Under the pieces are notes generated by a model that saw only the letters and a list, made by a program, of their open reading frames with translations, was not told the origin of the DNA and searched no databases. This document shows, in pieces, positions 2,934 through 61,992 of a DNA stretch of 64,000 nt. How positions within the stretch are numbered: position 1 is the first letter of the stretch; every line of letters begins with the position of its first letter. The position numbers and the translations under genes are program-made. Where the stretch lies: positions 124,001 to 188,000 of IMG/VR virus record IMGVR_UViG_3300025930_000007; one strand, written 5' to 3'.

Positions 2934-2963
2934 TTGATTTCACCCGTAAACGCCGGATATAAT
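2934..2963 (+). promoter_or_regulatory. sigma70-like promoter with GTAAAC box
   Basis: TTGATT-18-TATAAT; GTAAACGCCG in spacer; GTG 6 nt after the -10. Confidence 0.6.
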
Positions 2964-2969
2964 TCACCC

Positions 2970-4031
2970 GTGCCTCAGGACAATGTACTCAATCCTTCCG
3001 AATTCAACGTCGTCTATACCGCACGGAATGAATGGCGGAAGTCGATCGTCCAGAATGGAGGCATCAGCACCCCTCTCGTCACCGAGCTCATCAATCGGAT
3101 GTATGCCGTCTGTAAGATCCCGCCTCCCAAAGTCTATCGATTCGGATCTCCGCTTGCCTGCATCCTCGCCATTCCCTACCTCAGCGGGCTTCATGGCACC
3201 GGCTATTACGAATCCGCGATTCTCAAGATCCTGAAGGGCCCGCAGCTTCACAATCTCGGCGCCCGCTTCAATGGCCGGAATGCCTTTGCTCGACAGGGCG
3301 ATGACCGCTGGGATCGTCTTGCGGACCTGCTCCAGGTGAGCTTGGAACTGCCGATTAAGGCTCAGGTCAACGATTCCTTCATCGAGAACTTCAAGAAGGA
3401 TCTTCTCGAAGCGACGAAGGGGACGTGCAAGGCTGAGAAGATCGACATCCTGACCGATAAGTACCATCGTCTTACTGGCAGAGATGTTGTCCATGAAAAC
3501 TCGCGGATGCAGTGGTGGACGGACATGGCTCGTACGGGACTCTATTGGTGGCCGTATCGCAACTTCGCGGTCGTCTCAGAATATCCTAAGATCTGGCATC
3601 GTGGGCAGCGCGACGTTCCTCATCATGACTCAGAGGCCGCGATCCAGTTCCCAGATGACTACAAGCTCTGGGTCTGGCAGGGTGTTCAGGTGACGGCCCA
3701 GATCATCGCCTTCCCCGAGACGATCACGGTCAGACAGGTCCGCGAGGAGTCCAACTCTGAGGTCCAGCGCATCATGATCTCACGCATGGGCGCCGGGAAG
3801 TACCTCAAGGAAACGAACTGCGAGCTCGTGGACATGGACAGCATGACGCTCCAGGGAAGCGCTCCTCGGGCGCTCATGCGGGACGACCTCGGGAATATGT
3901 GGCTTGTCGGGACGGACGGATCGACGGCCCGCGTATATACTATGGCCGTTCCTTCGGATGTCTCGACCTGCAAGGAAGCCCACGAAAGGATTTGCGGTTT
4001 CGGTGAGAATAGATTGATTGCGGAGGCATAG
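2970..4031 (+). CDS. DUF6745 domain protein
   Basis: WWPY...SEYP...HHDSEAAIQFPDDYKLWVWQGVQV...EESNSEVQRIMISRMG; start moved to GTG 2970 because TTG 2934 is the -35 box. Confidence 0.75.
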   Translation: MPQDNVLNPSEFNVVYTARNEWRKSIVQNGGISTPLVTELINRMYAVCKIPPPKVYRFGSPLACILAIPYLSGLHGTGYYESAILKILKGPQLHNLGARFNGRNAFARQGDDRWDRLADLLQVSLELPIKAQVNDSFIENFKKDLLEATKGTCKAEKIDILTDKYHRLTGRDVVHENSRMQWWTDMARTGLYWWPYRNFAVVSEYPKIWHRGQRDVPHHDSEAAIQFPDDYKLWVWQGVQVTAQIIAFPETITVRQVREESNSEVQRIMISRMGAGKYLKETNCELVDMDSMTLQGSAPRALMRDDLGNMWLVGTDGSTARVYTMAVPSDVSTCKEAHERICGFGENRLIAEA

Positions 4032-4457
4032 ATGAAGCTGAGCCAGGTGACGAACGCGGTCGAAGCCCAGGAAATGATCCAGGAGAAGGCCAAGGAACTG
4101 GCCGTCCAGGACAAGCGCACGGTCCTGAAGATGGAAGTTGGTCAGGTCGTCCGCCAGGGCGACATCTACATCCACCGCGTTCCGAATGATCACGAGCGCG
4201 GACTGGAGCTCAAGACCCGCCAGCTCGCGCTGGGCGAGTCCATGGGCAGCCGGCATATCGCTGAAGCGCCGGCCAAGGTCTGCGAAGGGACCGAAGCCCC
4301 GGGCTGGGCACAGACGGAACTGCTCGGGCCCTGCATCGTCGCCGAGCTTCCGTTCACGGTCTCGCACCCGGAGCACGCGCACATCGACCTTCCGGCCGGA
4401 GTCTATCAGGTGACGCACCAGATGGATGCGCGGACGCGGAAGCGCGTGATCGACTAA
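4032..4457 (+). CDS. conserved phage protein usually paired with DUF6745
   Basis: RQGDI...LALGESMGSRH...HPEHAHIDLPAGVY motifs. Confidence 0.7.
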   Translation: MKLSQVTNAVEAQEMIQEKAKELAVQDKRTVLKMEVGQVVRQGDIYIHRVPNDHERGLELKTRQLALGESMGSRHIAEAPAKVCEGTEAPGWAQTELLGPCIVAELPFTVSHPEHAHIDLPAGVYQVTHQMDARTRKRVID

Positions 4458-5522
4458 CTCCGGAGGAAGGCCTCCACGAATCCACCGAGATCGCCATCCA
4501 GCACCTTGCTGGTGGCCGACGTCTCATACTCCGTCCGATGGTCCTTGATAAGCTGATACGGCTCCAGGACATAGCTTCGGATCTGATGGCCGAAGGAGGC
4601 CTCGAGCTTCGGACGTCGCTCGATCTTGTTCTCCTCAGCCTGCCGCAGCTTGGAAGCCAGGATCTCCAGGGCGTTGACCTTGTTCTGGAGCTGGGAGCGA
4701 TGGTTCTGGCACTTTGCCGTGATCCCGGTGGGCAAGTGCCGGATCCGGACGGCACTCGCCACTTTGTTCACGTTCTGACCGCCTGGACCGCCTGAACAGA
4801 AGGTCTCAATCTCCAGGTCCTTCTCGGCCAGTTCCACGTCCACTTCTGAATAGACTGGCATGACGTCGACGGCCGCGAAGCTCGTCTGCTTCTTGCCGTT
4901 GGCATCAAATCTGGAGACGTGCTGGACCCGGTGGACCCCACGTTCACCCCGGAGTTTCCCATAGGCATAGGGACCGATCACCTCGATCTCCGAATGATGG
5001 ATGCCGGCCGTGGATCCTTCCAGCCGATCTGTGATGGATACCTGGAATCCTTCTCTTTCCAGGTACCGGAAATACATTCGCTCAAGCTGCTCAGCCCAAT
5101 CCATCGCGTCGACGCCGCCGGCGCCCGACTGGATCGTGATGATCGCGTTCCGAAGATCGTCGTTGCCGTTGAAGAGCGCCTGAGTCTCGATCGCTTGAAG
5201 CCTTGCAGCGAGTTTCGGAAGGATCATGGCGATCTCTCCCAGGACCGGGGCGTCCACGACCGGATCCGCCAGTTCAAGCAGCTCGGCCTGGTCTTGAAGA
5301 TCGGTCGTCAGGGTAGTTATGGGGTCGGAGATCTTACGGAGGTGTTTTTGTTCTTCGATCAGAGACCGAGCGGAGTCCGGACGGCTCCAGAAATCTGGAG
5401 CTCCCATCCGCCGCTCAATCTCCAGGATGCGTTCCGAGTGGACATGGATGCTAAAGCGACTCCTCGAGGGCTGCGAGCTTGGTGAGCATGGACCCGAGAT
5501 TCCGCGCGAGTTCGTCCTTCAT
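4454..5522 (-). CDS. prfB: peptide chain release factor 2-like protein made by a programmed +1 frameshift at CTT-TAG-C
   Basis: GGQ (SGGPGGQNVNK, 4775-4783), GAGGVDAMDWA, FGHQIRSYV; 23-codon first ORF from ATG 5522 (SD AAGGAGG) ends in CTT TAG; the +1 frame continues SIHVHSERILEIERRMGAPDFW. Confidence 0.93.
5450..5465 (-). promoter_or_regulatory. prfB-type +1 ribosomal frameshift site with a UAG sensor codon
   Basis: GAGGAG (internal SD)-TCG-CTT-TAG-C; same 3-nt spacing and position as canonical AGGGGG-TAT-CTT-TGA-C. Confidence 0.9.
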
Positions 5523-6148
5523 AAGGACCTCCTTTCGGTTTCAAGTATATCCCTGAGGTTCCAGAGGGCAAGGAACTTCTTGGGATTGGTCTCCTTCCGA
5601 GGCACTTCGATCATGTCAATCGGGTTGCCCAGGTCATAGGGAGTCTGCTGCAGGTCGATCGGCGCGAACTCGCCAGCCGTCATTCCCGTCCGGAAGATGT
5701 TTGGCCAGCCGGGAGCCGTGGTAGAGGCCAGGAAGCGACTGCCGTTCGTGATGAGGGATCTAAGCAGTGGAAGTACTTCGGAATCCGGCAGATGGATCAG
5801 GACGTCCTTGCAGAGCACTAGGTCGGCCTTTTTGGGTTCTATCGAGAGGATGTCGGCATGATGGAATCTGATTGACGGAGTGGCGTATTTCCTCGCAGCT
5901 TCCACCGCGGACCGGACGATATCGTACCCATCATATTCGATGCCGGAGAGATCGACCTCCTTCAGCCAGTGGAAGTCACCGCAACCCAGATCCACGATGG
6001 ACTTGATGTTGAGGCTCCGGATCCAGACCGGAAGCTTCTGGATGATCTCCGCGCATGCTTCGATGGTTGAACCAGGTCCGCAAGGGGTCTCTTTGGATCC
6101 CCAAGCGTTCGACGAGACGATCCGGGAAAAGCGCTCTTCCAGGTTCAT
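5519..6148 (-). CDS. class I SAM-dependent methyltransferase
   Basis: IVDLGCGD motif I, YDGYDIV, ADLVLCKDVLIHL; TGA overlaps the release factor ATG (ATGA); start MNLEERF is 7 nt after TACAAT. Confidence 0.85.
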   Translation of the reverse strand: MNLEERFSRIVSSNAWGSKETPCGPGSTIEACAEIIQKLPVWIRSLNIKSIVDLGCGDFHWLKEVDLSGIEYDGYDIVRSAVEAARKYATPSIRFHHADILSIEPKKADLVLCKDVLIHLPDSEVLPLLRSLITNGSRFLASTTAPGWPNIFRTGMTAGEFAPIDLQQTPYDLGNPIDMIEVPRKETNPKKFLALWNLRDILETERRSL

Positions 6149-6276
6149 CGCCGGGATTGTACACGAAGTCGCTGCATGGGAAAAGCGCTTGAGTCCTAAG
6201 CATTTGAAGGTTAGACTATTGGCGTCGGCCCTCACCCCTCCCGGGGCCTTCCTCTGAAAGGAAGGTCTGTCTCTTC

Positions 6277-6688: not shown

Positions 6689-7015
6689 ATGCCGAAGAAG
6701 AAAGACATTCAAGAACTCGTCGTCGTCTTCGAGAGCATGTACAAGTATTACAAGGGCTGGGTGTTCTCCTACGAGCATCCTGGCGTCTTCGTATATTTCC
6801 AGATGGGCGGTGATCTCGGCGTGTACTTCACCCCCGATTTCGATAAGAACGGTGTCGTCCCGATCCAAGTCACCAACAACGATGGGGAGACACTTAAGGT
6901 TGAGGATGTTTCTTACGAGCACCCCGAACACAACGGCGTTCCATACGAGCAGATCGAGGCCTACAGCCTCTTCAAGATCGTTCGACCACACCTGGAAAGA
7001 TTAGGAGCATGGTGA
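6689..7015 (+). CDS. hypothetical protein
   Basis: 108-aa ORF tightly packed between neighbours. Confidence 0.65.
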   Translation: MPKKKDIQELVVVFESMYKYYKGWVFSYEHPGVFVYFQMGGDLGVYFTPDFDKNGVVPIQVTNNDGETLKVEDVSYEHPEHNGVPYEQIEAYSLFKIVRPHLERLGAW

Positions 7016-7554
7016 TGATCAACCTGAGACTGCAGCGCGCGGGACTGGGTCAAGCGGCTGCCGCGGCATCGAAAGTGGTGGAACTCACCGATGCTCAGTG
7101 GAGCCAGGTGACGGCTGCTCCGAAGGCGGTCGTCAAGTTCTACAGCCCGAACTGCCCGTATTCCCGGGCCTTCGCGCCGATCTATGAGGGTCTGGCCGCG
7201 CAATACCCGGACGTTCTGTTCGCCGCCATCAACGTCGACCAGAGCGTTCAGCAGGCCGGCGTGAACAAGATCCAGATGCTTCCGACCGTGATCTTCTTCG
7301 TGAACGGCGTGGCTAAGGGCAGGATCGACGGGGTACAGGAAGCATCAGACTTCCAGCAAGGGATGGCCACGGCATTCTCTGCCAGCACTCCGGCCGGCGC
7401 ACCGGCTCCGGCGGCCGCCCCTGCAGTGGGGACGCCTCGCGCGGGAACCTTGGTGGAGACTGCGCCTACTTCTCCCCTCGCTTATGTCGCTGGCGGCGCC
7501 GCGGCGGTAGCAGCGCTTGGTACTGCGGCCTATTTCCTGTTCCGTGGAAAGTAA
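7009..7554 (+). CDS. thioredoxin-fold protein (CxxS) with C-terminal membrane anchor
   Basis: VVKFYSPNCPYS, INVD, MLPTVIFFVNG; Ala/Pro linker; hydrophobic tail ending FRGK. Confidence 0.85.
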   Translation: MVMINLRLQRAGLGQAAAAASKVVELTDAQWSQVTAAPKAVVKFYSPNCPYSRAFAPIYEGLAAQYPDVLFAAINVDQSVQQAGVNKIQMLPTVIFFVNGVAKGRIDGVQEASDFQQGMATAFSASTPAGAPAPAAAPAVGTPRAGTLVETAPTSPLAYVAGGAAAVAALGTAAYFLFRGK

Positions 7555-7563
7555 GAGGGCATC

Positions 7564-8100
7564 ATGATCGATCTCAGAGGCGGAACATGGCTCGGCATGG
7601 TGCCGCTCGTCGACCGGCCATCTCTTGGTGCCGGGGCGCAGGATCTCAGCGACGCGGCCTTCAACCAGGTCCTATCGGCGCCGAAGGCGATCGTGGACTT
7701 CTGGAGTCCAGGCTGCCCGCACTGCATGCAGTTCAAGCCGATCTTCGAGGCTGTCGCCTCGCAATATCCGGACATCCTGTTCGCAGCAGTGAACGTGGAC
7801 AACTATCAGCAGAACGCAGCGATCTACCAGATCAGCGGTCTGCCCACGGTCGTCTTCTACCAGAACGGGAAGGAAGTAGACCGGATGGTGGGCGGGGCGG
7901 GGAGCGCCGCAGAGTTCCAGGCTGAGATCGCCAAGGCATTCTCGGGTGGCGGTTCATCGCCTCAAGGCCTGACCCCTGCGGGCGTCTCGATTCCCGCTTC
8001 CAGCGCTCCCAGCACTCTTTCGACGGTCGTGGGCGCTACCGCCCTTGTCGGCGTCCTTGGCGCCGTGTCCTACTTCGGCTACCAACTGCTGAAGAAGTGA
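7564..8100 (+). CDS. thioredoxin (CPHC) with C-terminal membrane anchor
   Basis: IVDFWSPGCPHC, VNVD, GLPTVVFYQNGKEVDRMVG; hydrophobic tail ending LLKK. Confidence 0.88.
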   Translation: MIDLRGGTWLGMVPLVDRPSLGAGAQDLSDAAFNQVLSAPKAIVDFWSPGCPHCMQFKPIFEAVASQYPDILFAAVNVDNYQQNAAIYQISGLPTVVFYQNGKEVDRMVGGAGSAAEFQAEIAKAFSGGGSSPQGLTPAGVSIPASSAPSTLSTVVGATALVGVLGAVSYFGYQLLKK

Positions 8101-14493: not shown

Positions 14494-15330
14494 ATGGTGA
14501 TGGGACCTTGCGGACCGTGTGCTCCAGGAGCAACGCCATTCGGCGGCCCGGCCAGCGGCCTTTGGCCATCCGGCTCGGGCATAGGACCTGCGGCTGGGCC
14601 TGTGGGCCCGATCATCTCGCCAACACCTACTCCTACTCCTATTCCGATTCCGACTCCTATCGGTCCTGCCCCTGTAGAGCTCGGCCTGGCGGCCTTCTTC
14701 AAGATCCTCGCAGAAACGGCGATCACGAACGTTCCGACGTCCAACATCATCGGCAACGTCGGCCTCAGCCCGGCCGCTGCCTCGAACATTACCGGGTTCG
14801 CGCTCGTGCTGGACGGCTCCGGCCAGTTCGCGACATCCTCTCAGGTCGCGTCTCCCGGCAAGGTCTACGCGGCCGACTACGCGCCTCCGACGCCGGCCAT
14901 GCTCACAGCCGCGGTCCTGGCGATGCAGACGGCATATACCGATGCTTCCCTCAGGCCCGCAGACTTCACGAACGTGAACGGCGGCAGTCTCGGAGGTCTT
15001 ACGCTTTCGCCGGGCACCTACAAGTTCACGTCGAACGTCAATATCGCATCGGATCTCACTCTCGCCGGTGGTCCGAATGATACCTGGATCTTCCAGGTCG
15101 ATGGGACCTTCGACATGACGGGTGGTGCGGACATCATCCTGACCGGCGGCGCTCAGAAGCAGAATGTCGTCTGGCAGGTCGCCGGCGCGACGACCATCGG
15201 ACCGGGCTCGATCTTCCAGGGGACGCTGCTCGATCAGACGAGCATCGCGCTGCAGACGGGCGCCGAGGCTCACGGCAAGCTGTATGCCCAGAGCGCGGTG
15301 ACGCTGGACAACAACTTCGTCGACGGCTAA
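14494..15330 (+). CDS. ice-binding-like protein (DUF3494/IBP-1) on a Pro/Thr stalk
   Basis: VELG..F.ILA.T.IT.VP.S.I.GNVGLSPAAA, GKVYAADYAPPTP, AYTDA, LGGLTLSPGTYKF, WIFQV, NVVWQVAG, AQSAVTLD. Confidence 0.92.
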   Translation: MVMGPCGPCAPGATPFGGPASGLWPSGSGIGPAAGPVGPIISPTPTPTPIPIPTPIGPAPVELGLAAFFKILAETAITNVPTSNIIGNVGLSPAAASNITGFALVLDGSGQFATSSQVASPGKVYAADYAPPTPAMLTAAVLAMQTAYTDASLRPADFTNVNGGSLGGLTLSPGTYKFTSNVNIASDLTLAGGPNDTWIFQVDGTFDMTGGADIILTGGAQKQNVVWQVAGATTIGPGSIFQGTLLDQTSIALQTGAEAHGKLYAQSAVTLDNNFVDG

Positions 15331-24057: not shown

Positions 24058-24563
24058 AGATCGCCGGCTGGCATGGCGGCCCAAGAAATCTGGTCGGGCC
24101 TCTTAGAGGTACCTGTTCCTCCGAAGGATGCGGCGTCTATCTTGCCGACACAAAAGCCTTCGCCGCCCACTTCGGATATCCCCATCGCGTGATAGCGTCG
24201 ATCAGGAATCCACTGGTCGTTGACGGAGAGAACATGCCGGCGCTCGAGGGGAACCTGCATCTTGGATTCTTCAGGGATAGTGCGCCGGATACCACCTGGA
24301 TGCGAGCGAACTACTATGCCTCTGAGAAGGCCGAGCTCCTGGATGTGGATCCGGACCGCGATCGCCAGCTTTATTTCGAACGTCTCTTTAGCCGGTTCGG
24401 GCCCGCACTCAATGCTTATCTACGCAAACGCGGCTATGATTCCATCTTGTTCAAGCTGCAGGTCGATCGCCTGCCGGAGCGCTTCAGCCAGGATCCCAAA
24501 CTCGCCGGGAAAGAAGTCCAGTGGTGGGTTGTGTTCGATTCGGCAAAAGTGCAGCTTGACTAG
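24054..24563 (+). CDS. ADP-ribosyltransferase-like protein (ART-PolyVal-like)
   Basis: WHGG, GVYLA, AAHFG, IRNPLVVD, GYDSI, VVFDS pattern. Confidence 0.6.
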   Translation: MKIAGWHGGPRNLVGPLRGTCSSEGCGVYLADTKAFAAHFGYPHRVIASIRNPLVVDGENMPALEGNLHLGFFRDSAPDTTWMRANYYASEKAELLDVDPDRDRQLYFERLFSRFGPALNAYLRKRGYDSILFKLQVDRLPERFSQDPKLAGKEVQWWVVFDSAKVQLD

Positions 24564-25276
24564 CGCGACGCGATGATGCTCACGGTCGTCGGGACGTGGT
24601 AGTCCGCCGGCATGTCTGGGCCCGGTTTCAGAACCTCAATGGACTTGAAACCTCCGTCCTGCAGGAGCAAGATCAGCGCGGTGGCGGTGGGAACAGTCCT
24701 CAGATCGGAAGATAGATTCGACCGGATCGTGGTAGGCTCACCCTTCGTCCGGGCCCGGAGATGGAAACAGGGTTTGTCATCGACGGCCACTTCCCCATCG
24801 ATGACGAGGATCTCCTTGGTGATCTTCATCGCCTTGCGAAGGACGTGAATCGGATCTGTCAGATGGTAGTGCACTCCCAGCATGAGCGTGACATCGGGAT
24901 CCGCGCCAGTCCACCCATCCTCGTCCTCGAGGTGCGCTTTCATAAAGACGCAGTTATTGATCCCCAAGGTGTAGGCGGCCGCCTCCGCTTCCTGGATGAA
25001 GGCCTCTGAGGAATCCAGGCCCAGGACATGCGCTGCTCCGGATCTCGCAGCTTCCATGCTCCAATAACCTTGGCAGCAGCCGAGATCAAGAACCTTCTTT
25101 CCGGCGAGAGATCCTCCGAAATGGTTGAGGAGCGGCTGGAAGAAGTGAGCCTTGCGCTTCTCGACACGATCCGCCCAGCCAGGCCGCGTGGGGACCGTTT
25201 CTCCCCACGGGAATTCGAAGCGGTAGTGCCAGTAGAGAGCCTTCTCGAGGATCTTGCGGGCTTCGTCCGGGCTCAT
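24560..25276 (-). CDS. class I SAM-dependent methyltransferase (CmoB/DUF1698-like)
   Basis: WHYRFEF, GKKVLDLGCCQGYWS, VLGLD, GVHYHLTDP. Confidence 0.85.
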   Translation of the reverse strand: MSPDEARKILEKALYWHYRFEFPWGETVPTRPGWADRVEKRKAHFFQPLLNHFGGSLAGKKVLDLGCCQGYWSMEAARSGAAHVLGLDSSEAFIQEAEAAAYTLGINNCVFMKAHLEDEDGWTGADPDVTLMLGVHYHLTDPIHVLRKAMKITKEILVIDGEVAVDDKPCFHLRARTKGEPTTIRSNLSSDLRTVPTATALILLLQDGGFKSIEVLKPGPDMPADYHVPTTVSIIASR

Positions 25277-25974
25277 ATCCTTGTCGGAGTGACCTTCACC
25301 GTAAACTTGGGTTTCTCCGGCTCGGGCTTGGGAGGGCTTTCTGGTACCAGTTTGGCGGTTGAATCAGCGTACCAGATGCTCGACCGGTGATTGACGGCAT
25401 AGGATTCCGCGGGCGGATTCGTAATCAGCATGGGCTTCTTGGGGAAGGCCTTATATTCCTCGTGGGTATAAGGGATGAAGGTCTTCCGGTCGAAGACGCG
25501 CACGCCGGGTTCTCCCATGACATGCTTCGTGAAAAAGGGAGGTCCCATCGCGTTCCAGGGTTCCGGCTTGAAATTCTTTCGGCAATCCCAGACGATCTTC
25601 TGCAGGAGTTTATGGCCTTTGGTGACTCCGATGACCGCATTGCTGTAGACCTTCAGGTCCTCGCGCTGCCAGCAGACGAAGAAATCGACGCCGTTCACCA
25701 ACATGTCGATGTTCTTAAGGCATTCCATGTCGGTATCGAGATAGACGCCGCCTTCCCGGTAGAGGATCTCGTAGCGGGCGATGTCCGAGCGCTGGGCCAA
25801 GCTCGTGCATTTCGGGAAGATATCCCGGTTGTTCAGCTTGCTGCATTCCTTTTCCGTCCAGAGCTTCATCGTCCAGGTCGGATGCAGCTTCATCCAGGAC
25901 TCGCCCCATTTCGAGAAGTGGAAGGGCATGGGCTTACCGCCCAGCCAGATTCGATGGAAGATTTTCGGGATCAT
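25273..25974 (-). CDS. glycosyltransferase, GT32/Och1-like (DXD)
   Basis: MIPKIFHRIWLG, SDIARYEILYREGGVYLDTDMECLK, GPPFFT. Confidence 0.9.
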   Translation of the reverse strand: MIPKIFHRIWLGGKPMPFHFSKWGESWMKLHPTWTMKLWTEKECSKLNNRDIFPKCTSLAQRSDIARYEILYREGGVYLDTDMECLKNIDMLVNGVDFFVCWQREDLKVYSNAVIGVTKGHKLLQKIVWDCRKNFKPEPWNAMGPPFFTKHVMGEPGVRVFDRKTFIPYTHEEYKAFPKKPMLITNPPAESYAVNHRSSIWYADSTAKLVPESPPKPEPEKPKFTVKVTPTRI

Positions 25975-29883: not shown

Positions 29884-29913
29884 AGTATATGCTTGAGTAT
29901 ATACTGATGTCAA
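29884..29913 (-). promoter_or_regulatory. near-consensus sigma70 promoter
   Basis: TTGACA-18-TATACT with palindrome AGTATATACT in the spacer. Confidence 0.65.
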
Positions 29914-29940: not shown

Positions 29941-30363
29941 TTAAGCTTCGAAGTGCCAGAGGTCCTGGAGCTTCATCGCCACGAAGGCCACCAGGCGGTC
30001 GCGGTTCTGGTACTCGTTCATCCGGGCGCCGTCGGGGATCTTCCCGGTCCAGTCCTTGCCGAAGATGCGCTCCACCAGAGCCTCGGTTACTTTCCCCGTC
30101 GCGCCCAGGTTCCCGGCGATCGCCCGGACCTCCTTCTCGCTGATCGGAAGGCGGGACTTGGGCTTTCCGGCGACCAGGTGTTCGATGTGCTGCTCGATCC
30201 CGTCGAGGAGGACGTCGCGATCCAGGTTCCGGATCTCCTTCATGCACGCCTCGCAATACGGGATCGAGGCGGTCTCGGAGCTCGGGCCGATCTTGAGCGT
30301 GACATTGACCGACGAGATGTCGATTCGAGGCATCGGCTTTTTGCAGGCGAAGCATTCGGACAT
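29941..30363 (-). CDS. hypothetical Zn-binding protein
   Basis: CFAC...YCEAC; AAGGAG SD. Confidence 0.6.
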   Translation of the reverse strand: MSECFACKKPMPRIDISSVNVTLKIGPSSETASIPYCEACMKEIRNLDRDVLLDGIEQHIEHLVAGKPKSRLPISEKEVRAIAGNLGATGKVTEALVERIFGKDWTGKIPDGARMNEYQNRDRLVAFVAMKLQDLWHFEA

Positions 30364-30409
30364 GAGGGCTCTCCTTCCTTTCGTTCCCGAGAAGTATTAC
30401 AATTCCAGC

Positions 30410-30808
30410 GTGAAGACGTCCATGGGTGTCGCCGAGATGCCGGTCGGCCTGACTGAGAAGGCGATCCGCCTGGATCTGGCGATGCGCGCGGGGTTCCGGG
30501 AGTTCATCACGGAGGGGAACCTCGAGGAAATCATGGTCGAAAAGGGGGCTCTCGAGGCGGTCAAGAGGCATTTCGACGGCCTCTGGGAGCGGGCCGGGGT
30601 CAAGCGATCGCCGGTATACGACGGGATCATCGGGGCGCTTACCGAAGGGCCCAAGACCCTGGAGGAGATCTTCGAGTTCCTGAAGGGGGATCCGGACTTC
30701 GACGACTTCCGGGACCTGGACCGGAAGACCTTCGCCAAGGCAGCCAAGGCCATGTTCGAGGCCGGCCTCCTGACGGTCGACGAGCGCAAGATGTGGGTCC
30801 TGGAGTAA
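30410..30808 (+). CDS. hypothetical protein, possible winged-helix C-terminus
   Basis: Lone + strand gene; GTG 6 nt after TACAAT; LTEGPKTLEEI...MFEAGLL. Confidence 0.55.
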   Translation: MKTSMGVAEMPVGLTEKAIRLDLAMRAGFREFITEGNLEEIMVEKGALEAVKRHFDGLWERAGVKRSPVYDGIIGALTEGPKTLEEIFEFLKGDPDFDDFRDLDRKTFAKAAKAMFEAGLLTVDERKMWVLE

Positions 30809-31521: not shown

Positions 31522-33610
31522 TCACCGCTTGCCTTTTGGCGCGTTTTCCCGGGAAGTGGGGGCCGGGAAGCCACCCTGCCTGATCTGGCCCGCCTGCTTC
31601 AATCTGGCTGCGCTGGCTTTATCCTCGCGCCTCAGGTTGGCCTGCGCGACCAGCGCTTTCGCCCTCAACCTTGCATCCGCGTTGTCCTGCGGGAGATGCA
31701 GGCCGAGCATCCCGGCCATGAGCCAGAGGATCTCGTCGCGTCGGCGGATGGCGAGCTCGCGGGCCTGGATCTCGGCTCTACTCACGGTTCCAGCCACCCC
31801 AACCCGGCTCTGGCGCCGCATCCGAGCCGCGGTCTCCTGGTCGATCGCCTGGCTCATGAGCCAGTGGGCCTCGCTCAAGGCCGTCCGGAAGTCCCGGTCG
31901 CTGATCTCGGGCTTCCGGTCCTCCGCGCTGGCCCTCTCCCTCTTCTCCCTCTCCAGGAACTCGAGGAGCTCCTGAAGATCCCCGGCCATGAGGGCGCTGT
32001 TCGCGTACAGGATATTGCCGTCCCGGAGCCTGATCGACCCATCCATCTGTCTCTCGGCCATACTATCCCTTCCTCCCGCCCTTCTTCGCACACCGGCTGC
32101 AGGTCCCGACCCTCTTCGTCCGGTCGACCTCGGCCCAAGAGCAGCCGCCCGGGCACGCGCGGTCATCCCGGCAGCCGCAGCTCCGGCAGGTCGCCACCGG
32201 GATCCCGACCAGCCCGTCTCCGGACATCCCGAAGGCGATGTAGGTCACCTTCCTCGAGGGCCTGAAGCTCTCCATCGCTTCCTCCTTAAGCGTTGACATC
32301 TATCCCCTCCCCCATCCTTCTCCAATGGGCGTCTGTCCGTACTGGCGCAGGAATGTGTCTATCGTGAAGGTCGTTAGGAACCCCGATCTCCACTCTTTGT
32401 CGGAGTCCCTCTCGGCTGGCATCAGGCTGAAGGCGATCGCATGGACTTCGCGCGTCCATTCAGGCCCCTTCAGCGGAGAAATCGGATTGGGATGGTTAGC
32501 GAACCATCTGATCGCCGCGAGGCCGCCCGCAGCGCACCCCTCTTCCTCTCTGGGGGTATATTTATGGCTCTCCCGGACCAGCGTTGCGAAGTCTTTTTCT
32601 AGAATCTGGTTGAGATACTTGACTACCTGGTGCTTCGGATAATCAGAAAGCTCAATCATCGTCGCCGTCTCAGCCGCCATCAGGCGCTTACGAGGTTTTA
32701 GAGGGCCCAGTTGCCTATAGCGCAGCAGGAAGACTGCAAATACTTTCCCTATAGTCAGGTCCATCTACTTTCCTCCGCCCCGGACCAGCAGGTATCGCTG
32801 GTCGTCGGTGTTCCACCTATAGATCCGTGCGAAATGGCCGTGCTTGATCCTCCACACCTCGGCGATCTCCATGGCCTCGGTCAAGGTCCTCGCCGGCGTC
32901 ACCCGCGTGATCTTGGCCATCTCGATCAGCACCCGGTAGGGATCCCTCTTCATGGTCTCATTCCCCCGGATCCTCAAGTAGCCGAATCGCATTGGAAAGC
33001 CAGCCATTGGCGTCGACGTCGCGCTCTTCGTCTTCATGCCCCTTGTTGCGGCGAGTAGCTCCGAAATCGCCCTGTCGCCTCTCGGAGATTTCGGCACGGT
33101 GCTTTCCGCAAAGCCTGGTCAGCTTTCCGGCCCGGGTCAGCCCTAAGGCGACCTCGCAGACGCGATATTCCTGATCGCACCACGAACACTCAAGCGAGCA
33201 ATTCGTGGGGAACGGCATCCCCGTCACCGAGCTGATGAAGTCGCATCGAGCACACATGATATTTACTTCGAGAACATGACCCTCTTTCCATCGCGCACGA
33301 TCTGGAGGTTGTACTTGACCTTCCCCATCTTGCTGATGTCGTCTTCGGACAGCCCCAGGGCCATCGTGAGCCAGCGCTCAGCCCCTTCCCGGCCCAACTG
33401 GTTCAGGACGGTCAGGTAGCCGAATCCGACGAACTTGGAGATGATCTGAGCCAGCACGATGTAGTCGTAGTTCTCGATCGGCCTTTTCTTGCCTTCCCAA
33501 GACCCCACGATCTTGGAAAAGACCAGCATCGCATCATCACTGGCCTTCTCGGTTGCCTTGAGCAGCGCTTCTTCATTCATGGTTCTTTCCTTTCTATTCC
33601 TTTTCACCAC
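31522..33610 (-). other. cluster of short hypothetical ORFs
   Basis: 31522-32061, 32063-32299, 32300-32764, 33263-33610 and others, head to tail. Confidence 0.55.
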
Positions 33611-34226
33611 GCGGTTTGTAAGGAGTCTCGAACGCTTTCTCGACCGACCATTTCAACCGGTTCAGGCGGTCATAGAGGACATGGTAAGGGATCTTCACAA
33701 TCTTGCTCCAGGCACTCAGCTTGTGATCGACACCCTTGTAGGTATAGAACTTGAGCCCATGCTCCAGTGGCAGATTGACCGCGTCGTCGATGGACATCTT
33801 CTGGTTGACCACCCGGTGCTGCAGCCGCCGATGGTCGACCCCGGTCATCTCGCTGACCTCGGCCAGCGAGCGCATCTGACCGCGGAAGAAGACCATGTGA
33901 TTGACGCGCCTCTTCCGGTTCTGCAGTTTGGGAGGCTCCCACTGGACATTGTCCGGCCAGTAGCCCTTGTCGTTGTCGATCCGGCCCAAGGTGTGCTTCT
34001 TGGTGGGCCGATCCCCGGCCTTCGCCTGGAGTTCCGACTCGAAGACCGCATAGGATTCGCGCCACCGCGGATCCATGCGTATCCCTCGGCTCCCGTAGTT
34101 CTTGAACTTGGGGTGGTTCTTGTTGAAGCAGCGCTGCTTGATCTGCGACCAGATCTGGTAGAGCCGCTTCTGCTTGCCGCCGGCGGTGGCGCCGTGGTAC
34201 TCCAGTTCCTTGGTCTCTTTCTTCAT
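33594..34226 (-). CDS. HNH-type homing endonuclease-like protein
   Basis: YQIWSQIKQRC, YGSRGI, RPTKKHTLGRIDNDKGYWPDNVQW; repeated C-terminal DNA-binding modules. Confidence 0.8.
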   Translation of the reverse strand: MKKETKELEYHGATAGGKQKRLYQIWSQIKQRCFNKNHPKFKNYGSRGIRMDPRWRESYAVFESELQAKAGDRPTKKHTLGRIDNDKGYWPDNVQWEPPKLQNRKRRVNHMVFFRGQMRSLAEVSEMTGVDHRRLQHRVVNQKMSIDDAVNLPLEHGLKFYTYKGVDHKLSAWSKIVKIPYHVLYDRLNRLKWSVEKAFETPYKPRGEKE

Positions 34227-36110: not shown

Positions 36111-36431
36111 CTACTTGACCAGCTTGAATTTATTGAGTGGATCGAGCGGCTTCATCATCCTCATGAGGCTGGCCATCGGATCCTTGCACGGCACCCATTC
36201 CGCGGGAGCTTCCGAGAGAAACTTGAAGTCGGCATCCACAACTCGGGCTGACTCGATGAAGGCCTTGCGAACCTTCTTCCAGCTTCTGGGCCCCTTCTCG
36301 ATCACCTGGGCGAGGTAGCACGGGCCCGGCGCACTCCAGGAGCTCTCGAGGACATCCAGGATCCGCCAGATCGCACGGCCATAGGTGCCGTCGAAGTAGA
36401 TCTTGTCGCCCTTCTTGAATCTAGGCTTCAT
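36111..36431 (-). CDS. hypothetical protein
   Basis: MKPRFKKGD start overlaps the recombinase stop (ATGA). Confidence 0.55.
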   Translation of the reverse strand: MKPRFKKGDKIYFDGTYGRAIWRILDVLESSWSAPGPCYLAQVIEKGPRSWKKVRKAFIESARVVDADFKFLSEAPAEWVPCKDPMASLMRMMKPLDPLNKFKLVK

Positions 36432-37525
36432 GTTCCCATCACGATCTTGGAGAAGTCGGCCAGGCCCTCCGATCCGATGCGCTCCATGCTTCCGAGATAG
36501 ATATCGGTGGTCTTGAGATCGGCATGGCCGAGGCGTTCCTTGATCTCCTTCACGTCCTTCCCAAGTTTCTTCATCACCCTGGCTCCCAGGTGGCGGAGGC
36601 CGTGCATGTGGATGTTCACGATGTCCGGATCTAGGCCTGCCTGGGCGCCGTGGCTCTTGATGAGGGCGTCGAGGGAGGAAGCGGAAAGCGGCTGCTCTCC
36701 TACCTTCATCTTGATGTTCCGGGCCCGGTTGAGGTACTTCCCGGCGTCGGTGGTGGCGATCCACGCGGGCGAGCTCCCCTTCAGGATGCGTCCGGCCGAA
36801 TTCCAGTAGTCCTGGATGGCCTTGATGATCTCGTCGGTAAGGTCGATCAGGATGGGGTGGCCGCCCTTCTGGATGAAGCGGATGTAGGTCTTGCCCGAGT
36901 CCTCCTTGAAGTCGGAGAAGCGGATGCGGGCGATCTCCTGCCGCCGGCGGGTGGTCCAGAGGGTGGTGGTCATGATCGCGTAATCGCGCTTCCCGATGAC
37001 CGTCCGGCGATCGCAGGTCGCGAGGAGTTTGTGGTATTCCTCGACCGTGAACTCGCGTAGGTCATTGGATTTCTCGTAAGCCTGGATCTTGGGGAGGATC
37101 TCCTTGATGGACTTCCACGGATTCGACTGGATGATGGCGGTTCCCATGGTGTCCATGGGGCGCGCGAGGAAGTCGAAGAAGGAGGAGGCGGCCGCACAGT
37201 AGTTCCGGATCGTGCGGTCGGCCAGGCCCTTCTTCCGGAGATGGTCGACGTAGCTGGTGAGGTGGGTGCGTGTCACGGCAACGGGGCTCTGGAGGCCGGT
37301 GGCGGCCAAGAACCCGAAGAATTCGCGGAGCGCGACCTCGTAGGTGGTCCAGCTCGAGGGCTTCTTCATGGCCTTGAAGTCGTAGAGGGCCATGGCCATC
37401 TGCTGGGGCCAATGGGCGAGATTCCCTTTCACGGTGCTCTGCAGGTGGACCAGCTTGTGAGGGACCGGCGAAAGGGGTTGCGGGATAGGGGTCAGCGGGA
37501 AATTCTGTTTCGGCGTCTCGTCCAC
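36428..37525 (-). CDS. tyrosine recombinase/integrase (XerC/D-like)
   Basis: Core-binding domain; RDYAI..TTRRRQEI, QKGG, HGLRH, LGHADLKTTDIY catalytic motifs. Confidence 0.92.
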   Translation of the reverse strand: MDETPKQNFPLTPIPQPLSPVPHKLVHLQSTVKGNLAHWPQQMAMALYDFKAMKKPSSWTTYEVALREFFGFLAATGLQSPVAVTRTHLTSYVDHLRKKGLADRTIRNYCAAASSFFDFLARPMDTMGTAIIQSNPWKSIKEILPKIQAYEKSNDLREFTVEEYHKLLATCDRRTVIGKRDYAIMTTTLWTTRRRQEIARIRFSDFKEDSGKTYIRFIQKGGHPILIDLTDEIIKAIQDYWNSAGRILKGSSPAWIATTDAGKYLNRARNIKMKVGEQPLSASSLDALIKSHGAQAGLDPDIVNIHMHGLRHLGARVMKKLGKDVKEIKERLGHADLKTTDIYLGSMERIGSEGLADFSKIVMGT

Positions 37526-40654: not shown

Positions 40655-41321
40655 ATTTGTGGAGGATTGGGGTCGGGGATGTAGCGTCCGGAGATTGACC
40701 CCGAACAGGTGCAGCCCGCATAGCTTACCCCGGGATTCTTTTCGTGGAAGGGGCAGGTATGGTGCGTGACTTCCGACACCATCTTCAGACCTCGCAGATC
40801 GATCATCATGGCCATCTCCTTTTCGAAAAGCACTCGGCCTTCGGCGCCATCCTCATGGAGCAGCTTTGACTTCTTCCAGGCGTTCTATCGCCAGGCGGAA
40901 GAGTTCACCGATCTGGTCGTTCGTGATCTGCTTCCTTATCCTCAGGGCCACAAACTCCGGATCGTAGCGGAGCTCGTGCTCCATATGGATCAGCATTCGA
41001 AGGCTGATCTTGCTCCGCTGGGTCCGCCAGTCGCCCGTCACCACCGTCTTCCAGCGCTCGATGTCGGCCTCCAGGATCCTGGGATGCCGGGCGTCCAGGG
41101 CCTCCGTCTCGTCCCGAGGTGCCTCCTCGATCGCCTTCAGCATCTCCTTCACCGCAAGCTCCGCCTTCTCCGCGCGGCAGGAAAGGCAGGGCTCTCCCCT
41201 CTGGATGCTGTACCAGATCACCCAATGGGCGTTGTGCCCGCAGGACAGGAACTCGGGAACTTCTTCCGGCCGCGTCAGGTGGTCGATCGGCCGCCCGCTG
41301 TGCGTTTTTTCAACCATTCAT

Positions 41322-52400: not shown

Positions 52401-52428
52401 AGTATAAACGCGGTTTACGGTCTGTCAA
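52401..52428 (-). promoter_or_regulatory. near-consensus sigma70 promoter with GTAAACCGCG box
   Basis: TTGACA-16-TATACT. Confidence 0.65.
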
Positions 52429-59535: not shown

Positions 59536-60033
59536 CTACTCCTCCACGTGCCGGACGCAGCCGTCCTTGTCGGGCAGCCCCCACTTCCGCTTCTTGCAGA
59601 TCTCGAACTTTTCCCGGATTGCATCGCGGGAAGACACCTTCTTCCTATGGGCGAGGTGAAGAAGGAGCATGATGCAGTCCGCAATTTCGTGGGCGATCTG
59701 CTGATCGTTCGCATCATTGAGTTCCCGGAGCTCCTTCTCCAGATGAAGGAGCATCGTCTTGGGCGTCGACGTCGGGAACGTGATGTCGCTCCAGGAACCG
59801 ATCTCCGTCTGAAGGCCATCGAGGGCCTCCTTCTCGATGATCGGCATCGTCACCAGGACTCCGTCGTCCTTCATGTACCGGGCGACGTCCTGGGCCAGTT
59901 GAGCCTCGGCATCCGAGGTCGTGTTCACGATCGGATTCCGAAGATGGGCGACCTCATCATATTCCGAGGGCCGCTTGCTCAGCCACCAGGCATAGGCGGA
60001 ATCGATCAGATTGCTTTCACGCTGCGTCGTCAT
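59536..60033 (-). CDS. dATP/dGTP pyrophosphohydrolase-like (DUF550, MazG superfamily)
   Basis: WSDITFP, HLEKELREL, EIADC, KFEICKKRKW..PD..G...H. Confidence 0.75.
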   Translation of the reverse strand: MTTQRESNLIDSAYAWWLSKRPSEYDEVAHLRNPIVNTTSDAEAQLAQDVARYMKDDGVLVTMPIIEKEALDGLQTEIGSWSDITFPTSTPKTMLLHLEKELRELNDANDQQIAHEIADCIMLLLHLAHRKKVSSRDAIREKFEICKKRKWGLPDKDGCVRHVEE

Positions 60034-60298
60034 CAGTCCTTCCTTCCGACTTCCGTCCAGGTGCCGCCTGTCACGAGCCCTTCCGGCACGGTGGAGATCG
60101 GCGGCGCCGCCTTCTTCCTCTTGGCCGGCTTCTTCCGGACGAGCGGCTTGTTCGCGATCACGCAGAGGGAAGATCCCATGGAACGGTAGTACTCCCGGTT
60201 CTTCTTGGCCCAGCGCTCGCCTTCCGCCCGGGTCTCCGTCTTGTGGACCGTCCGGAGTGGACAATTCGCCAGTACCAGGAATTTTGCTTCAGGCTTTT

Positions 60299-61362: not shown

Positions 61363-61992
61363 TCATGAATCCACGATCTTCTTTCCTTCGATCGGACCGT
61401 ATTGGGCCAGCACCTTGTCGATCCAAGTCTGCGTCTTGGCCTTAGCCATGACGAGCTTGTGGCCGCTGCCGCTCTTCCCCACCACGCCCTCGAACGTCAC
61501 CTTGGGCGAGAGATCGTCCTTCCCCTCCCGGATCCGGTCGACGAAGCCGCGGGTCCAGTTGAAGCAGCCGAGGAAAGGTGCGATCCGAAGATGCTTGAAG
61601 TTGTCGAGGAACTCTTTGGGACCCAGGATGCCCTTCTTGTTGGGGCAGGCATCGAACAGAGTCAAGGTCTTTGGATCCTGGGGATCATGCTTTCCGGCAA
61701 AGGAATTCTTTCCCCAGAACTCCATGAACACGATCAGATGATCCCAGCGGTTCTTCTTGATGACCTCGTTCAGCTTCTCCTGCCAGAACTCGAGGAACAG
61801 CGGAATAGCCAAGCCGAAATCAGGATCGGTGTGATCGAACAGGCGATTGCGAGTGCCGAACTTGTGCCAGCCCTGCTTCCGGCTGTATTCGAAGCGCAGA
61901 TTGGAACCGTCGAGCTTGTCGAAGACGTAGGCAGCATCCATTTCGCGGAACTTCTGCCCGTTGCTGGATTGAATTGAAGGGTAAGGCTTCAC
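61363..61992 (-). CDS. ATP-dependent RNA ligase-like nucleotidyltransferase
   Basis: YPSI, KLDGSN (motif I), GTRN, MEFWG, LFD, EGVV, KAK. Confidence 0.8.
   Translation of the reverse strand: MKPYPSIQSSNGQKFREMDAAYVFDKLDGSNLRFEYSRKQGWHKFGTRNRLFDHTDPDFGLAIPLFLEFWQEKLNEVIKKNRWDHLIVFMEFWGKNSFAGKHDPQDPKTLTLFDACPNKKGILGPKEFLDNFKHLRIAPFLGCFNWTRGFVDRIREGKDDLSPKVTFEGVVGKSGSGHKLVMAKAKTQTWIDKVLAQYGPIEGKKIVDS

Follow-up and report, generated by a model that had tools for sequence, protein, structure and literature searches.

The release-factor gene described here, which belongs to a huge soil phage, carries, at the point where its reading frame changes, the complete +1 frameshift cassette of bacterial prfB with TAG as the sensor codon in place of TGA, and its product, which is phylogenetically an RF2, belongs to a clade distinguished by substitutions at residues that read or discriminate the third base of the stop codon. 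The gene lies in a 64,000-nucleotide stretch of DNA (hereafter the window; positions 124,001 to 188,000 of the IMG/VR virus record IMGVR_UViG_3300025930_000007). What is demonstrated below is the anatomy of the cassette and its conservation, the existence of the clade with its signature substitutions, and the use of the standard genetic code; the shift itself, the codon specificity and the feedback are inferred. We lean, with a probability of about 0.55, towards a factor that reads UAG and a cassette that still operates as negative feedback.

The frameshift cassette

The elements of the locus, all on the minus strand, are as follows (positions are those of the window).

6235-5519, minus strand: class-I SAM methyltransferase gene upstream of ORF0; its TGA stop overlaps the ORF0 ATG (ATGA)
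5571-5544, minus strand: promoter-like TTGCCC-N16-TATACT, from a consensus scan, 22 nt upstream of the ORF0 start
5534-5528, minus strand: Shine-Dalgarno sequence AAGGAGG, read directly; a 5-nt spacer follows, then ATG 5522-5520
5522-5451, minus strand: ORF0, 23 codons (5522-5454) plus TAG (5453-5451)
5465-5460, minus strand: internal Shine-Dalgarno-like GAGGAG (frameshift stimulator), 3 nt upstream of the shift codon
5459-5457, minus strand: spacer TCG, read directly
5456-5450, minus strand: shift site CTT-TAG-C (CTT 5456-5454, sensor TAG 5453-5451, C 5450)
5452-4454, minus strand: release-factor body, 332 codons plus terminal TAG, in the +1 frame, without internal stop
4933-4877, minus strand: codon-reading loop HRVQHVSRFDANGKKQTSF, body residues 174-192; canonical form HRLVRxSPFDxxxRR(H/Q)TSF
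4783-4775, minus strand: GGQ catalytic motif, G224-G225-Q226 of the body, intact and invariant across 28 clade members

The first-pass annotation, made from the sequence alone, had described a strong Shine-Dalgarno sequence AAGGAGG and an ATG at 5522 opening a 23-codon ORF that ends GAGGAG-TCG-CTT-TAG-C, a +1 frame open into a release-factor body, and a cassette kept whole except for its sensor codon. These claims held at all coordinates: the +1 frame stays open for 332 codons and the site is a complete prfB-type +1 frameshift site. Its observation that the list of open reading frames starts the gene at 5407 is also correct, but that ATG is 15 codons inside the RF2-homologous region. The locus passes a test for the prfB-type layout, namely an ORF0 with its own start codon and Shine-Dalgarno sequence and a body open in the +1 frame, as do its counterparts, for a total of 16 lineages; the RF2-specific UGA as in-frame stop is absent, the window carrying UAG instead. 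In this arrangement CUU is the P-site codon, UAG the sensor stop codon and the 3' C a weak context.

Among 18 aligned loci GGAG and CTTT are invariant and the base after the sensor stop is C or T; AAAGGAG(G/A) is kept in most of the relatives, and in most lineages the ORF0 ATG is placed 23 codons ahead of the shift site. ORF0 encodes the N-terminal helix of the release factor. Its peptide is similar to that of ORF0 in a bacterial sister gene (L029, see below), and its dN/dS is 0.15-0.58; searched alone, it matched no NCBIfam model.

By itself, the 13-nt motif GGAGNNNCTTTRR is common enough, with 2 matches in the window against 0.7 expected, and the second GGAGNNNCTTTGA match (40857-40869), antisense to better-scoring genes, was set aside as probably due to chance. 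The significance of the motif at the release-factor gene rests on its position, which is the exact point where RF2 homology switches frame, and on its conservation in 16 independent lineages. Because the cassette recurs in these lineages, in separate assemblies that range in GC content from 0.33 to 0.67, a sequencing error is ruled out.

The promoter-like site falls within the 3' end of the upstream methyltransferase gene. In relatives compared down to ~69% protein identity, L007 and L018 retain both hexamers, and L008, L009 and L014 retain TATACT. The ATGA overlap between the methyltransferase gene and ORF0 suggests, as an inference from sequence, that the two are translationally coupled, and L018 and L019 share this gene order. 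The methyltransferase was considered as a PrmC-like GGQ methylase; this was rejected, as it is not PrmC-like by NCBIfam.

Placement in the RF2 family

ORF0 and the +1-frame body were searched as separate pieces. The body matches the PCRF and RF-1 domains from residue 7 onwards (PF03462, 6e-45; PF00472, 2e-34) and, without the aid of ORF0, scores 378.1 bits against the prfB model TIGR00020, for which the cut-off is 370, while the cut-offs of the RF1 family are missed (222 vs 423 for TIGR00019, prfA; 229 vs 400 for NF001859). Solved RF2 chains align with the body over its full length (E=2e-72), the four-domain RF2 architecture is present, and a dN/dS of 0.10-0.22 is indicative of purifying selection. 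With E. coli RF1 as the root, a phylogeny places the gene inside RF2 and not RF1. The protein is thus phylogenetically an RF2, though one that has none of the SPF, V202 and R213 features, and it is not an RF1, yet it carries the glutamine with which RF1 reads the third base.

The codon-reading loop

The loop aligns without gaps to those of Thermus RF2, E. coli RF2 and E. coli RF1. Relative to E. coli RF2, Q177 of the body is equivalent to V202, H178 to R203, R181 to P206, K187 to R212 and K188 to R213; Q177 also aligns with Q185 of RF1, V176-Q177 standing opposite V184-Q185. The change in the loop is real, the tripeptide SRF replacing SPF. RF1 Gln185 and Thr198 form hydrogen bonds with the third base of the stop codon (PMC3974865); the Gln185 position allows either A or G there, and HRVQR was present in all 28 RF1 loci that we fetched.

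Columns were taken as clade-defining if the canonical consensus reached at least 85% and was essentially missing from the clade, in a comparison of 57 canonical with 45 clade sequences. Just seven columns in ~330 meet this definition, and six of them lie within residues 201-213 of E. coli RF2.

L201 (E. coli RF2): canonical L; clade I or V
V202 (E. coli RF2): canonical V or I; clade C (25) or Q (20)
R203 (E. coli RF2): canonical R; clade H
P206 (E. coli RF2): canonical P; clade E, R, A, K or D
R212 (E. coli RF2): canonical R; clade K
R213 (E. coli RF2): canonical R; clade K, 45/45

The SPF tripeptide, whose proline is present in 56 of the 57 canonical sequences, is absent: the clade has S-(E/R/A/K/D/T)-F, and L017 alone keeps SPF, so that E, R, A, K, D, T and P are all found at the highly variable middle position. 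The V202/R213 pair of discriminators is likewise absent, with Q177 and K188 in the window as compared to V or I together with R in 57/57 canonical proteins. Invariant in the clade are S205, F207 and T215 (S180, F182 and T190 in the window) and GGQ, and also H178, K187 and K188. A role in excluding G from the third position has been ascribed to R213 of RF2, and the substitution R213I raises termination at UAG (as cited in PMC7530605). Most members of the clade are also altered at E172 (to S or G) and K177 (to H), in E. coli RF2 numbering, which are hotspots for the gain of UAG in experimentally evolved Salmonella RF2 (PMC7530605); we give this evidence less weight because the alignment is gappier in that region.

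In the tree, the form with Cys at V202 is basal and the Gln form is nested inside it. Every Gln-type lineage for which there are data has a TAG sensor, and all three lineages with a TGA sensor are of the Cys type. The pattern may hint at a stepwise origin, though with so few lineages no more can be said.

Relatives of the gene

A search of 5.8 billion proteins was performed and the best 120 matches were sorted by loop. About 62 clusters have the loop HR(I/V)(Q/C)H-x-S-x-F-D...KKQTS, and the rest have the canonical HRL(V/I)R-x-SPF...(R/K)R(H/Q)TS. The variant-loop clusters (~60, metagenomic) form one clade with a support of 100/100. Its sister group has SPF, RRQ and CTT-TGA, and the nearest reference genomes are two soil MAGs labelled Planctomycetota; the sister gene L029, already mentioned for its ORF0, has a cellular context, being located among genes for an ABC transporter, OmpA and a PDZ protease at a GC content of 0.70. 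The phage-borne factor probably descends from a bacterial RF2, the closest being that of the soil Planctomycetota MAGs.

Clade-specific patterns found no member of the variant clade in 185,579 reference genomes, the clade is absent from GenBank phages, where nothing exceeds 42% identity, and scans of IMG/VR with the protein and with the clade alignment retrieved only the window's own two contigs. Contigs of the clade reach 352 kb, the length for L015, encode integrase, HNH, NUDIX, sigma-factor and RNA-ligase genes, and span GC contents of 0.33-0.67. On the basis of this gene content, the GC range and the absence from reference genomes, the clade appears to be widespread among mobile, phage-like elements of diverse hosts.

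Sensor codons within and outside the clade

DNA was available for 16 distinct lineages of the clade, of which 13 have CTT-TAG and three (L011, L015/L016, L020) have CTT-TGA. Five more proteins are inferred to have TAG, because they were called from upstream in the +1 frame and F-S across the site implies TTT-AG. By comparison, 39 cellular RF2 genes fetched with the sister-clade alignment comprise 34 with TGA, two with TAA, three without a site and none with TAG, and one further gene, with an SPY loop, has TGA. Of 8,164 motif-bearing bacterial genomes in a published survey, 98.6% have TGA and about 1.4% TAA, with no TAG (PMC12421855). In the literature that we searched, we found neither a TAG sensor nor this loop described.

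The sensor codon has changed at least four times on a careful tree, and well-supported branches alone force three changes. Each replacement of TGA by TAG requires two substitutions, presumably via TAA. The repeated changes suggest that both TAG and TGA are acceptable in the clade, unlike in bacteria.

The first-pass annotation had proposed examining homologues for co-occurrence of CTT-TAG with the altered loop, and had named TGA in close homologues as grounds for refuting its reading. The two features do co-occur at the level of the clade, having arisen on the same branch, and TGA is found in 3/16 lineages against TAG in 13/16. Inside the clade, no residue of the decoding region was found to co-vary with TAG as opposed to TGA, and the three CTT-TGA lineages share identical reading loops with TAG lineages, so that the link between loop and sensor holds at the clade level only.

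The window and its genetic code

Two IMG/VR contigs, of 266,490 and 236,090 bp, match the region of the gene with 100% identity. The window has a GC content of 0.58 and consists mostly of small genes without known families, along with genes for a tyrosine integrase, an HNH endonuclease, an RNA ligase, a MazG-like protein, methyltransferases and thioredoxin-domain proteins, a content consistent with the accessory region of a huge phage. As there is no structural gene in the window, the viral label rests on IMG/VR. No tRNA gene, including any suppressor tRNA, and no Rfam match was found in the window. There is also no second release-factor gene within it, but it covers only 64 kb of a 236-266 kb element; a scan of IMG/VR with RF1 patterns did not match the window's contigs, which is weak evidence since the patterns need an exact match.

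A codon-usage gene caller run with the standard code produced ~121 genes covering ~80% of the window, of which 55% end in TGA, 24% (29/121) in TAG and 21% in TAA. The TAG gene ends have GGAG-rich ribosome-binding sites before them and start codons directly after, and a DUF6745 gene that ends with TAG in the window ends with TGA at the same place in the relative L018. The window therefore uses the standard code, and TAG is a true stop. Recoding of TGA was also considered, as a crude ORF-length test seemed favourable, but this proved to be a GC artefact; tryptophan codons are not avoided, TGG making up 2.0% of codons in the window.

A proposed UAG-reading factor under retuned feedback

According to the explanation that we favour, ribosomes would start at ATG 5522, read 23 codons and pause when CUU occupies the P site and UAG the A site, while GAGGAG, 3 nt upstream, would pair with 16S rRNA and promote re-pairing on UUU. 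Where UAG is read slowly or not at all, the +1 shift would give the full factor, which would be made only by way of +1 ribosomal frameshifting; where UAG is read fast, the 23-residue peptide alone would result. The rebuilt third-base readers (an RF1-type Gln or a Cys at V202, and Lys at R213) would permit termination at UAG, and the factor is predicted to terminate at UAG and UAA and probably still at UGA. The sensor would be set to the UAG-termination capacity of the infected cell, that is, host RF1 plus the phage factor. The preference for TAG may, by inference, have two grounds: a TGA sensor would let the plentiful host RF2 turn the gene off as well, and TAG reports the scarcer UAG-termination capacity, which is needed for about one quarter of the phage genes.

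The first-pass annotation left a choice between a factor that terminates at UAG and regulates itself and one that is made only when host RF1 activity falls. The first is favoured because it is the residues for reading or discriminating the third base that carry the clade-defining substitutions; the gain of UAG, with the sensor following, is proposed because the remodelling of these residues and the TAG sensor arose on the same branch. We would refine it, in that specificity was probably broadened and not switched, given the retention of CTT-TGA in three lineages with identical loops, the repeated changes of the sensor and the lack of co-variation between the two. Frameshifting and specificity remain inferences.

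Several observations weigh against this explanation. The clade never departs from the Ser and Phe of the SPF tripeptide, and under the tripeptide-anticodon rule (Ito et al. 2000) S-x-F predicts RF2-type specificity. The replacement of R213 by lysine is conservative, and the connection between loop and sensor, as CTT-TGA persists with identical loops in three lineages, exists for the clade as a whole and no further. Laboratory variants of RF2 that gain UAG also terminate at UGG (PMC7530605), yet tryptophan codons are used normally in the window (2.0% TGG). Finally, the evidence includes no expression, proteomic or biochemical data.

A bolder reading, which we consider less likely than not, is that this is a natural class-I factor for all three stop codons, or for UAG and UGA, that spares UGG, and that it evolved in large phages with its frameshift sensor retuned to UAG.

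Alternative explanations

The strongest competitor, which remains possible, is that the factor has ordinary RF2 specificity (UGA, UAA) and that the UAG sensor ties its synthesis to host RF1 alone, with one of two outcomes: self-repression would be uncoupled, leading to overproduction of RF2, or the factor would be synthesized only when RF1 is limiting. In favour of this scenario, S and F of the tripeptide are kept, the 55% of phage genes that end in TGA would make extra RF2 activity useful, and the E. coli cassette does shift with UAG in the place of UGA (PMC5009743). Moreover, overproduction of RF2 is toxic to bacteria (PMC12421855), an effect that a phage might exploit. Against it, six of the seven clade-defining substitutions, located in the reading loop at third-base determinants, would be left unexplained, and the two frames could simply have been fused, as in the RF2 of Lak phage, whereas the cassette is strictly conserved.

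Apart from the UAG-reading and the RF1-gated hypotheses, the remaining explanations are unlikely even when taken together. In one of them, the protein would no longer be mainly a reader of stop codons but would act in partnered ribosome rescue or as a decoy, with a relaxed loop and a drifting sensor. The highly variable middle residue of the tripeptide and the four or more sensor changes are compatible with this, but we regard it as improbable: H178, K187, K188, S180, F182 and T190 are fixed and not relaxed, GGQ and all domains are kept at a dN/dS of 0.1-0.2, and drift should have yielded some TAA sensors, none of which were seen.

It is still less probable that no frameshift takes place and that translation starts at the internal ATG 5407, the upstream ORF being incidental. 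Automatic public gene calls do start at internal Met codons, but such a start is not conserved, called lengths varying between 216 and 347 aa, and the first 15 codons of the RF2-homologous region precede ATG 5407. Relatives with as little as 48% identity keep ORF0, its Shine-Dalgarno sequence and the cassette, as does the bacterial sister gene. That TAG is recoded (code 15-type), as in some large phages that also carry RF2 (bioRxiv 10.1101/2021.08.26.457843), or is an assembly error can be all but dismissed, since TAG ends 29/121 called genes with ribosome-binding sites and starts adjoining, one of these gene ends has TGA in a relative, the window has no suppressor tRNA, frame-0 read-through meets TGA after 2-11 codons, and the identical TAG is present in independent assemblies.

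Implications

The prfB frameshift is a textbook case of autoregulation by recoding, and its sensor codon is so constant that the lack of TAG among the 8,164 genomes has been cited as proof of what the frameshift is for. The natural clade described here departs from the rule of the TGA sensor, and does so along with changes at the residues that govern acceptance of G at the third position; specialists in recoding or termination would find such a TAG-sensor clade surprising. Should the factor read UAG, the sensor codon would be seen to track specificity, a strong natural test of the autoregulation model; the clade would supply sequences for the study and engineering of broadened RF2, of relevance to recoded organisms and the expansion of the genetic code; and large phages would have a new route to control translation termination in their hosts. 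Should it not read UAG, this would be the first natural RF2 gene gated by the activity of RF1. If the bolder reading were true, it would provide a natural omnipotent single release factor, which laboratory evolution of RF2 has failed to deliver without UGG toxicity. The clade also offers natural sequences with which to ask directly whether UAG and UGA can both be read by a factor of bacterial type that does not read UGG.

Comparison with known systems

The phage cassette has the same components as that of E. coli-type prfB, namely an ORF0 of 23-25 codons, a Shine-Dalgarno-like hexamer, a 3-nt spacer, CUU, a stop codon followed by C, and a body in the +1 frame, and the spacing is identical: AGGGGG-TAT-CTT-TGA-C in E. 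coli prfB and GAGGAG-TCG-CTT-TAG-C in the phage. It differs from bacterial prfB in the sensor, which is UAG instead of UGA, and in its location on a phage-like element. With canonical RF2 (TIGR00020) the protein shares full-length homology, an intact GGQ and placement inside the RF2 radiation, but the canonical loop HRL(V/I)R-SPF...(R/K)R(H/Q)TS contrasts with HR(I/V)(Q/C)H-S-x-F...KKQTS in the clade. The likeness to bacterial RF1 lies in HRVQ at the start of the loop, Q177 being equivalent to the third-base Gln185; the PxT tripeptide of RF1 is not found in the phage factor, and RF1 genes do not have the cassette.

Among the laboratory RF2 variants that gained UAG are E167K, E170K, E172K, K177R, D329A/G and R213I (PMC7530605), and the clade is likewise altered at R213 and, for the most part, at E172 and K177. 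The substitutions themselves are different, R213I as against R213K in the clade, where E172 is replaced by S or G and K177 by H, and the changes of V202 to Q or C and of R203 to H have not been reported for the laboratory variants (PMC7530605), the cost of which is termination at UGG.

Both RF1 and RF2 are known from huge phages (PMC7162821; bioRxiv 10.1101/2021.08.26.457843; PMC13037316), and the TAG-recoded Lak and Agate phages resemble the element described here in having an RF2-family factor on a very large phage. The RF2 of Lak-A2, however, is only 36% identical, with a near-canonical loop (SPY, KR) and no frameshift, and the Lak phage recodes TAG, whereas the phage of the window uses TAG as a stop.

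Termination codon, reading loop and relatives of the release-factor gene

The release-factor gene ends in TAG (window 4454-4456, minus strand), as do its counterparts at the metagenomic loci L007, L008 and L015, while the terminal stop in other relatives is TAA in ten and TGA in two. One locus of the clade, L017 (2805-2823), has either retained or regained the canonical tripeptide SPF in a loop that reads HRICHISPF...AKKQTS, and yet its sensor is CTT-TAG; a TAG sensor therefore does not require loss of the proline of the tripeptide. The nearest cellular RF2 genes (L029, L031 and L032), which come from high-GC soil MAGs, are approximately 50% identical to the window protein, and the MAGs of L031 and L032 carry a Planctomycetota label. 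These genes hint at the donor lineage, or at a lineage that some clade members have as host.

Promoter-like sites and a second motif match

A promoter-like site lies just 5' of the release-factor ORF0, within the end of the methyltransferase gene, and two similar sites occur elsewhere in the window:

5544-5571, minus strand: TTGCCC-N16-TATACT
29884-29913, minus strand: TTGACA...TATACT
52401-52428, minus strand: TTGACA...TATACT

Both hexamers of the ORF0 site are kept in the clade loci L007 and L018, and TATACT is also kept in L008, L009 and L014.

The cassette motif is matched once more at 40857-40869 (plus strand) by GGAG-CAG-CTT-TGA, with the +1 frame open. This match runs antisense to minus-strand genes of better score and is probably a chance occurrence.

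Gene content and orientation

The orientation of genes flips at about 24560: as far as 24563 almost every called gene is encoded on the plus strand, and beyond that point on the minus strand, the exceptions being the release-factor/methyltransferase pair and one plus-strand gene at 30056-30808. This 64 kb contains no virion genes. Other genes include:

14494-15330, plus strand: ice-binding-like domain protein (strong match to PF11999, E=4.7e-68)
24560-25974, minus strand: methyltransferase with a CmoB-like (PF08003) match, adjoining a DXD-motif glycosyltransferase
33594-34226, minus strand: HNH endonuclease
36428-37525, minus strand: tyrosine integrase
59536-60264, minus strand: MazG-like pyrophosphohydrolase
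61363-61992, minus strand: RNA ligase

The CmoB-like methyltransferase could be a tRNA-modifying enzyme. The ice-binding-like protein is carried here by a soil phage-like element.

Genes around the release-factor gene

2934-4457, plus strand, convergent with the release-factor gene: DUF6745 protein (365 aa), directly followed by a 141-aa ORF
5519-6235, minus strand: class-I SAM methyltransferase, its 3' end overlapping the release-factor start as ATGA
7009-8100, plus strand: tandem pair of thioredoxin-domain proteins (181 and 178 aa)

The DUF6745 gene and the 141-aa ORF, which belongs to no known family, also adjoin the release-factor gene in L015 and L018, and this recurrence indicates a conserved module of unknown role. 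The thioredoxin-domain proteins, with Ala/Gly-rich linkers and hydrophobic C-terminal tails, are likewise found as a pair in L018 and L019, two loci that also share the methyltransferase to release-factor gene order. As a gene pair, the upstream methyltransferase and the release factor resemble the prfA-prmC pairing of E. coli, but the methyltransferase protein gave no match to PrmC, its top matches being weak ones to BchM- and UbiG-type models.
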